From Auanema rhodensis (taxonomy: Eukaryota > Animalia > Nematoda), in assembly GCA_964057225.1 (NCBI GenBank), contig OZ059900.1:11532001-11596000 (forward strand): a stretch of DNA of 64,000 nucleotides, written 5' to 3'. The translations under genes were made by a program, and so were the position numbers. Each line of letters opens with the position of its first letter. Position 1 is the stretch's first letter. This document shows, one piece after another, positions 16,385 through 17,111 of this stretch. The notes beneath the pieces are model-generated. The model did no database searches. It was not told where the DNA came from and was given only the letters and a program-made list of their open reading frames with translations.

Positions 16385-17111
16385 GGCCCTTGCTGGAACG
16401 AATAAGAAACTTTAAGAAATTGACGGTTAGCGTGGGGTGGCGGAATGGTGTGAACCATTTTACTGCCAAGCAGAACTGAAGGTGAGGGTCGCGGGTTTAA
16501 CCAAACCCCTCACCAATCGAGGAACCTAAGCTAGCGGTCAACACTCAGTAAACAGTCTTTTTACGGCGGGGCATCGCTGTTGAAAGATAGTGGATGTGTG
16601 TGGACCTAAGGCGATGGCAACTCGTGGTAAGAAGATCTCACTGGGCGAAGAGCCATGCCCGGCTACAGAAACCAGCGAGCATCTACCTACCGCAATAAAT
16701 CCAGGCCCTTGCTGGAACGAATATGAAACTTAAGAAATTGACGGATAAGGTGGGGCAGTGGAATGGTATAAATCATTCCACTGTGAAGCAGAACTGAGTA
16801 CTCCAGGCCCTTGCTGGAACAAATACGAGACTTTAAGAAATTGACGGTTAATGTGGGGTGGCGGAATGGTGTGAATCATTTTACTGCCAAGCAGAACTGA
16901 AGGTGAGGGTTGCAGGTTTAACCGAATCTCTCACCAATTGAGGAACCTAAGCTAGCGGTCAACACTCAGTAAGCAGTCTTTTTACGGCGGGGCATCGCTG
17001 TTGAAAGATAGTGGATGTGTGCGGACCTAAGGCGATGGTAACTCGTGGTAGGAAGATCTCACTGGGCGAAGAGCCATGCCCGGCTAAAGAAACCAGCGAG
17101 CATCTACCTAC
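16385..17111 (+). repeat. 306-bp direct repeat (16385-16690, 16806-17111) plus a third copy of its first about 95 bp (16704-16797)
   Basis: GGCCCTTGCTGGAAC...AAGAAATTGACGG...AAGCAGAACTGA occurs three times. The two long copies are 421 bp apart and end in CATCTACCTAC. Confidence 0.95.

Follow-up and report, generated by a model that had tools for sequence, protein, structure and literature searches.

How does a fragment of small-subunit ribosomal RNA come to stand, three times over, in the leader of a mobile element that resides in a large-subunit gene, and does it serve the element there? The question is raised by a stretch of 64,000 nucleotides of the Auanema rhodensis genome, analysed here as a whole and hereafter called the window. 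An earlier note on this DNA had pointed to a triplicated leader module carrying a near-exact copy of the host 18S central-pseudoknot sequence, and had proposed that the copy may mimic rRNA as a decoy or docking site for ribosome-biogenesis factors or small RNAs. All the features of the window that are described in the following lie on the forward (+) strand.

The genomic setting is a head-to-tail array of 18S/5.8S/28S rDNA with a unit of 6567 bp, whose intact copies obtain identical Rfam scores across the 64-kb window. One 28S gene of this array is interrupted. Specifically, its 5′ portion (13870..16259, 28S nt 1-2390; LSU model 24-2342, in keeping with the unit period of 6567 bp) matches up to position 16259, and the match restarts at 23668 with the 3′ portion of the same gene (23668..24774, from Rfam and junction comparison). 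The 12 bases at 16248..16259 are found again, identical, at 23668-23679, so that the 3′ portion opens with the right copy of a target-site duplication of about 12 bp, corresponding to 28S nt 2379-2390. This insertion position falls in what we take to be the region of the reported nematode R4 insertion. PMC10946416 lists R4 as residing in the 28S of nematodes. The remaining rDNA units of the window are 100% identical to each other, suggesting that the array has been polished or collapsed. An assembly gap of 200 N at 53204-53403 covers the 18S 3′ end, ITS1, the 5.8S, ITS2 and about 56 nt of the 28S start; this gap is the cause of the apparently aberrant rDNA unit at 51.7-53.4 kb, which had been considered as a product of the 18S-like sequence discussed below and was rejected as such.

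The 7408-bp insert (16260..23667, as defined by junctions, ORF and domains) is, by its coding content, an intact non-LTR retrotransposon of the RLE type, belonging to the R2/R4/Dong group. It contains an uninterrupted single ORF of 1275 aa (19527..23354), in which domain searches and a profile alignment identify a reverse transcriptase (RT), a C-terminal CCHC knuckle and a restriction-like endonuclease, followed by a 3′ UTR between the ORF end and the right junction (23355..23667). In particular, the RVT_1 domain is recognised with E=8.9e-23, the PDB matches of the ORF are LINE-1 ORF2 and R2 proteins, and a profile built from the ORF and eight relatives can be aligned with R2 proteins as far as the R2 C-terminal end (E ~1e-59). 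Invariant residues in the profile are C1068, H1077 and C1082 of the knuckle, the pair P1147-D1148, and K1179. No AP-endonuclease domain (PF03372) was detected in the 14 best relatives. It is this combination of a single RT ORF, an R2-like C-terminal end and relatives free of AP-endonuclease that places the insert in the R2/R4/Dong group, whose members likewise possess a single ORF with RT, CCHC knuckle and PD..K endonuclease, and no APE. The nearest named protein, from the nematode Panagrolaimus, is 27% identical, and the relatives retrieved with the window ORF share 25-36% amino-acid identity with it, none exceeding 36%. Named R4, Dong or NeSL proteins were not among the matches to the window ORF in any search; in a neighbour-joining (NJ) tree, which comprises no named R4, Dong or NeSL protein, the window ORF clusters only with elements that occupy the same site.

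This site is occupied in seven relatives (L001, L002, L003, L007, L008, L009 and L010), with junctions at 28S nt 2380-2392 in L002, L003 and L007-L010, and at GCGCAT in L001. The insertion site is therefore common to the window element and its relatives, and the short duplication of the 28S target adds to the likeness with the R4 group of Ascaris lumbricoides and other nematodes, which likewise inserts in 28S downstream of the R2 site and generates a short target duplication. The 5′ junction of the window element at 28S nt 2390 is two bases shorter than that of L002, L003, L008 and L010, located at nt 2392, an offset of the same kind as the small junction variation described for R2. Other relatives end elsewhere in the rDNA, either at 28S nt ~2962 (L004, 5050-5079) or at 18S nt ~1707 (L024, 5282-5327; L048, 4444-4489; L040, 16714-16769; L066, 12639-12694). 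Since relatives are found at several rDNA sites, target switching within the rDNA does occur in the group, and it seems to be common. Head-to-tail tandem arrays of elements, with spacers of 90-1300 nt, were also observed among the relatives (L086, L087, L092 and L093, whole loci). In addition, L001, the closest relative, bears a full-length 5S rRNA-like sequence (4033-4148, 84 bits) starting 107 nt past the stop codon, which may lie in or beside the 3′ UTR or may derive from a chimeric contig; no 5S-like sequence of this kind was found in the 3′ UTR of the window element.

At its 5′ junction the window element carries a candidate HDV-like self-cleaving ribozyme (16260..16377). The match to Rfam RF02682 scores 21.5 bits, below the gathering score of 44, and the helices were read from the sequence: P1 (16260-65/16325-30), P2 (16305-11/16371-77) and P3 (16312-14/16322-24), together with L3 (16315-21), P4 (16337-65) and J4/2 (16366-70). 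As P1 opens with the very first nucleotide of the insert, the predicted cut falls exactly at the 28S/element junction. An ACC-N7-GGT core just past the junction is present also in L001 (40.1 bits), L008 (29.2 bits), L007 and L010. HDV-like ribozymes at the 5′ junction have been reported for R2, R4 and Dong, with a P1/P1′ spacing ranging from 23 to more than 700 nt (PMC3774820). This sub-threshold match is the only RNA family that the Rfam search returned in the leader, with no snoRNA, tRNA-like or other family.

The noncoding leader that separates the 5′ junction from the ORF is 3267 nt long and contains no long ORF. Downstream of the ribozyme candidate it is organised in repeated modules of two kinds, A and B, delimited by repeat comparison. 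Module A1 (16378..16479) directly follows the last ribozyme helix and precedes module B1 (16480..16690); then come module A2 (16695..16797), the most diverged A copy, 78-81% identical to A1 and A3, module A3 (16798..16900) and module B3 (16901..17111), with A3+B3 94% identical to A1+B1. In other words, the triplication proposed earlier stands for module A, which occurs in three copies, and fails for the module as a whole, the true layout being A1-B1-A2-A3-B3. The initial 441 nt of the leader are predicted to fold far better than shuffled sequences (z = -3.98), and module B1 appears from this fold to be a strongly structured RNA. In modules A and B, for which few sequences are available, base changes are one-sided only (G-C to G-U), and no double compensatory pair was scored in the alignments. 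Further downstream, repeat detection identifies a 214-bp tandem array of 5.4 copies (17782..18927), whose copies are 95-98% identical, each with a 40-nt near-perfect palindrome, and in which 47-codon ATG ORFs recur. Such a leader has no counterpart in the same-site relatives. Of these seven elements, six have their open frame 0-270 nt from the junction (the copy in L010 is possibly broken), no leader or 3′ UTR similarity was detected among about 90 related loci, and the exact two-part pattern of module A gave 0 matches in metagenome contigs. Given that the same-site relatives have short leaders with no similarity to that of the window element, the long leader is, on this comparison, a lineage-specific expansion, and its 3.3 kb with A/B modules and 214-bp array set the window element apart from its same-site relatives within the R2/R4/Dong group.

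Each copy of module A encloses an 18S-like island. The corresponding 18S segment (18S nt 1092-1112; 5985..6005) is the same in every 18S copy of the window, and a scripted comparison reproduced the matches reported before: copy 1 (16406..16426) agrees with it at 20/21 positions and copy 3 (16827..16847) at 19/21. Copy 2 (16724..16745) has the 1-nt deletion formerly described, and its match extends by one base further on each side, its 22 nt being equal to the 23 nt of 18S 5984-6006 minus one A. Moreover, the 18S genes and all three island copies share a host variant, an A in place of the G that is conserved in the Rfam eukaryotic SSU consensus (AAAGGAAUUG). All differences between island and 18S fall at positions unpaired in 18S, a distribution that does not reach significance ((12/21)^3 ~0.19). 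As the island copies are paralogues within the A-B-A-A-B array, they count as one event and not as three; judged by these alignments, the three motifs are paralogues of one 21-23-nt sense fragment of host-type 18S nt 1092-1113.

A single event of this kind could in principle be a fortuitous likeness of an A/U-rich leader stretch to 18S, later multiplied by duplication. The paralogy of the three copies, the A/T-rich composition of the motif, the fact that the match was spotted post hoc and the chance nature of a companion 28S match (see below) are all compatible with this explanation. However, among dinucleotide-preserving shuffles (n=1500 each for the whole element and for the leader alone), a 21-mer with no more than one mismatch against either strand of the rDNA unit appeared in 1/1500 shuffles of the element and in 1/1500 shuffles of the leader. 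Copy 1 was retrieved with E=0.002 when the whole element was compared with one rDNA unit by blastn-short, copy 2 lengthens the match to 23 nt, and the island of a second lineage, with E values down to 4e-7, cannot be due to chance. Coincidence is thus a very improbable explanation, and an origin of the island from 18S rRNA is well supported. The assignment to the central-pseudoknot segment is likewise upheld: the motif does copy host-type 18S in sense orientation, beyond what chance would produce, and the copied segment includes the pseudoknot 3′ strand. The copy is also strictly delimited, in that no 18S similarity was found past the island (60 nt on either side, local alignments versus shuffles, p 0.13-0.87). 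A longer, decayed 18S homology around it was considered and rejected, flank alignments being no better than those of shuffles, and a search for further rDNA pieces (IGS, ITS, 5.8S, 28S) in the element yielded 10-15-mers at noise level only.

Two further claims about the module fared less well. The first concerns the 11-mer AAGCAGAACTG, which is located at 16468, 16786 and 16889 and is present in every 28S copy (e.g. at 1895), and which had been linked to 28S on account of this identity. The match is at chance level, with E=9.4 in blastn-short and about 25 comparable 11-mer matches; a second rRNA capture, from 28S, was accordingly rejected, the 11-mer being better explained by the closure of a hairpin. 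In both consensus and MFE folds, CGGUU at the island 3′ end is predicted to pair with AACUG of the terminal 11-mer and to close the module hairpin, so that the 11-mer would be conserved because AACUG is needed for this closure. The second claim, that the motif is retained while its flanks diverge, proved weak: 19/21 columns are invariant within the island and 58/76 elsewhere in module A, a difference that is not significant (Fisher p=0.23), in a test that rests on three paralogues only and that is biased, as the island limits were themselves set by the end of similarity. In these three paralogues there is no sign that purifying selection acts more strongly on the motif than on the adjoining sequence. 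As for the exposure of the island, its nt 1-16 have a predicted unpaired probability of 0.72-0.78, which ranks in the top 3-5% of leader windows.

The explanation that we favour, and to which we would give about an even chance of being correct, is that 18S was captured at the RNA level by the RT of the element in the nucleolus and was afterwards tandemly duplicated, the island being a passenger whose 3′ end takes part in a local helix. According to this model, the element RNA would be made within the Pol I pre-rRNA in the nucleolus, where 18S rRNA would be its most abundant neighbour, and the RT would have switched template onto 18S rRNA, thereby copying the fragment. Repeated RT-mediated duplications would then have built the leader and carried the fragment along, while the island 3′ end (CGGUU) would have been recruited into the module hairpin. 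The island would thus have a local structural role at most and would be no rRNA mimic. In favour of this model speak the significance and the sharp boundaries of the match, the host variant that it has kept, its copying within A-B-A-A-B, the lack of a significant excess of conservation, the predicted pairing of the island 3′ end with the 11-mer and the absence of the module from the same-site relatives; in addition, the rest of the leader abounds in tandem duplications, such as RT template switching commonly leaves behind.

Precedents exist for several aspects of this model. Template jumps of the R2 RT and rRNA pieces of 9-36 nt at R2 5′ ends are documented, including tandemly duplicated rRNA pieces of 13-28 nt at R2 5′ junctions (PMC3774820). 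Like the island, these R2 tags are short (9-36 nt), sense and sharply bounded, and belong to the 5′ part of an RLE element that resides in rDNA. They differ from it in that they derive from the element's own 28S target, whereas the island stems from 18S nt 1092-1113 and the element sits in 28S, and in that they are placed at the extreme 5′ end, whereas the island lies 146 nt inside, past the ribozyme candidate and in a repeated module. Chimeras produced by RT template jumps, for instance one R2 5′ junction with a cyclin A-like sequence (PMC3774820), similarly consist of sense host RNA with no flanking homology; they are, however, single-copy and 5′-terminal, while the island is internal, amplified and fixed in its lineage. 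Outside retrotransposons, yeast dsRNA virus genomes have been found joined to stretches of host rRNA, which in ScV-LA variants comprise 178 nt from 18S and 213 nt from 26S (PMC7721687). Here too sense host rRNA is found in the RNA of a selfish element, and the role proposed for it is equally unproven; yet the viral pieces are far longer and constitute terminal 'extra' sequences, in contrast to the 21-23 nt of the island in a retrotransposon leader. PMC7721687 also refers to rRNA-like sequences in other transcripts, citing Mauro and Edelman 1997.

What these precedents do not directly provide is an internal position. The island is 146 nt from the element 5′ end, past the ribozyme candidate and with non-rRNA module sequence on both sides, and this counts against a capture: the end-to-end jumps on record lengthen an element at its 5′ terminus, and further steps are required to account for an internal island. 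One way to bring rRNA into the leader is offered by R2-type ribozymes, whose cleavage point frequently lies 9-36 nt upstream, within the rRNA, leaving an RNA that carries a piece of the target (PMC3774820). The island could then be a fossil 5′ tag, inherited from an ancestor or a recombination partner that was inserted after 18S nt 1112/1113, and internalised upon the move to 28S. Its 21-23 nt fall within the documented range of 9-36 nt, tandem tag duplicates are known (PMC3774820), its 3′ boundary is sharp, and the relatives described above at 18S nt ~1707 (L024, L048, L040, L066) and at 28S nt 2962 (L004) fit a history of this sort. However, none of the relatives proved to be inserted at 18S nt 1112/1113, Rfam detects no HDV-like core after the island, and the sequence ahead of the island within the repeat unit is non-rRNA module sequence. 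Furthermore, relatives from the second lineage carrying an island reside in (ATT)n or in tandem arrays and not in 18S. A fossil tag is, all in all, rather improbable.

The second lineage came from a screen of all the retrieved relatives against the window rDNA unit, which yielded one further internal rRNA-like piece, in L052. This island (198-232) corresponds in sense orientation to 18S nt 1104-1139 (E=5.7e-6) and is bordered left and right by sequence that is not rRNA. The close relatives L089 and L090 likewise carry sense islands matching 18S, with E values down to 4e-7, at 138-154, 481-497 and 827-863 in the former and at 190-226 in the latter. In L089 the island is part of a tandem leader repeat of about 343 nt and lies about 370 nt ahead of the ORF; the ORF-proximal repeat holds the long island (18S nt 1102-1141) and the two upstream repeats hold a version of 16-17 nt. 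The possibility that the L052 island is a genuine 18S flank was rejected, since the upstream sequence is non-rRNA and the L089 counterpart lies in the tandem repeat of about 343 nt. Across the module copies of this lineage the block AATTGACGGAA is invariant (5/5), while nowhere is the alignment more variable than in the stretch immediately before it. The three elements form a Dong-like lineage from marine metagenomes, and their ORFs are 25% identical in amino acids to that of the window element and belong to a different clade of the NJ tree. Within the same clade as L052, L094 is inserted in an (ATT)n microsatellite, which it adjoins at 1-70 in the manner of Dong, an element that inserts at a microsatellite, and L093 lies in tandem element arrays. 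Neither has an island in the short upstream sequence that could be compared, and no island was detected in L091 and L092 when they were compared with the rDNA unit and with 18S nt 1085-1145.

The islands of the two lineages overlap by about 12 nt around AATTGACGG, with different limits. The 3′ strand of the central pseudoknot falls within this shared core, as seen from the established 18S structure and from the Rfam structure line. The parsimonious reading is that the two islands represent two independent acquisitions, L052, L089 and L090 thus providing a recurrence in an independent lineage. The chance of an overlap can be roughly estimated at 1%, or at about 4% if only universally conserved rRNA stretches are detectable in a foreign host. 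The overlap hints at selection or at a mechanistic hot spot. The recurrence, together with the internal position, counts against a purely neutral story, and the high predicted accessibility of the window island, which would suit a binding platform, is a further point against a mere passenger.

It is because the second lineage carries an overlapping 18S island that a functional reading has to be weighed. The exposed and repeated island would then be a selected docking or decoy site that mimics a segment of rRNA. Candidate partners are a box C/D snoRNP guide, U3 and the processome, antisense ribosomal small RNAs, or an rRNA-binding protein, and the interaction could affect the nucleolar retention, processing, stability or unconventional translation of an uncapped Pol I-derived RNA. 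Several observations are consistent with this idea: the independent reappearance, in the tandem leader repeats of L052/L089/L090, of a sense 18S island that overlaps, the invariance of AATTGACGGAA beside highly variable sequence, the predicted single-stranded display of all three window copies, and the host 18S variant that these copies share. Moreover, the element is intact, hence the leader is compatible with a working ORF, and translation of R2-type elements is non-canonical and follows an unknown route (PMC13580325), which leaves room for leader functions.

Nevertheless, other results argue in the opposite direction. No significant excess of conservation is seen in the window. The module with the island is absent from all seven same-site relatives, at the evolutionary distances available (25-36% amino-acid identity), and absence from orthologous leaders is what the earlier note had named as evidence against its own proposal; in these relatives leaders of at most about 270 nt suffice where the copy reads through. 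In L089 the predicted unpaired probability of the island is 0.22-0.64, so that the island would not be consistently accessible, and the two islands share just about 12 nt, with differing limits. Concerning the partners, inspection by eye found no box C/D layout on either strand of module A. For U3, the core common to both islands (AATTGACGG) does include the pseudoknot 3′ strand; the U3 duplex reported in yeast, however, covers only 18S nt 1139-1143 and requires the processome context, so that U3 box A pairs here with 4-5 nt only, as opposed to the 21-23 nt that are kept in the island (PMC4340053). U3 pairing alone is a weak candidate because of this duplex of 4-5 bp. Taken together, rRNA mimicry in the window element is a possible but unlikely explanation. 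A broader proposal, that a short sense copy of the 18S segment around the pseudoknot 3′ strand is a selected and recurrently acquired leader element of the R4/Dong group, appears to us slightly more doubtful still. If true, the tandem-displayed island would engage a component of ribosome biogenesis or the rRNA-directed small-RNA machinery, and would help an uncapped, nucleolus-born RNA in its retention, export, translation or return to the rDNA.

Whatever its origin, the island resembles a universally conserved SSU stretch almost perfectly while belonging to no 18S gene, and as such it may mislead probes, primers and read mapping in studies of rDNA. If it was merely captured, as in the RNA-level capture that we favour, it would be a clean natural record of nucleolar RT template switching onto rRNA, and would record as well how long repetitive leaders get built. 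If instead it is functional, it would be one of the few instances in which a mobile element has copied a portion of ribosomal RNA. R2/R4 elements start out as a Pol I co-transcript and end as an RNP that has been translated and brought back into the nucleus, by way of a translation step described as non-canonical (PMC13580325); on this passage a functional leader element borrowed from 18S would offer a concrete, testable handle.
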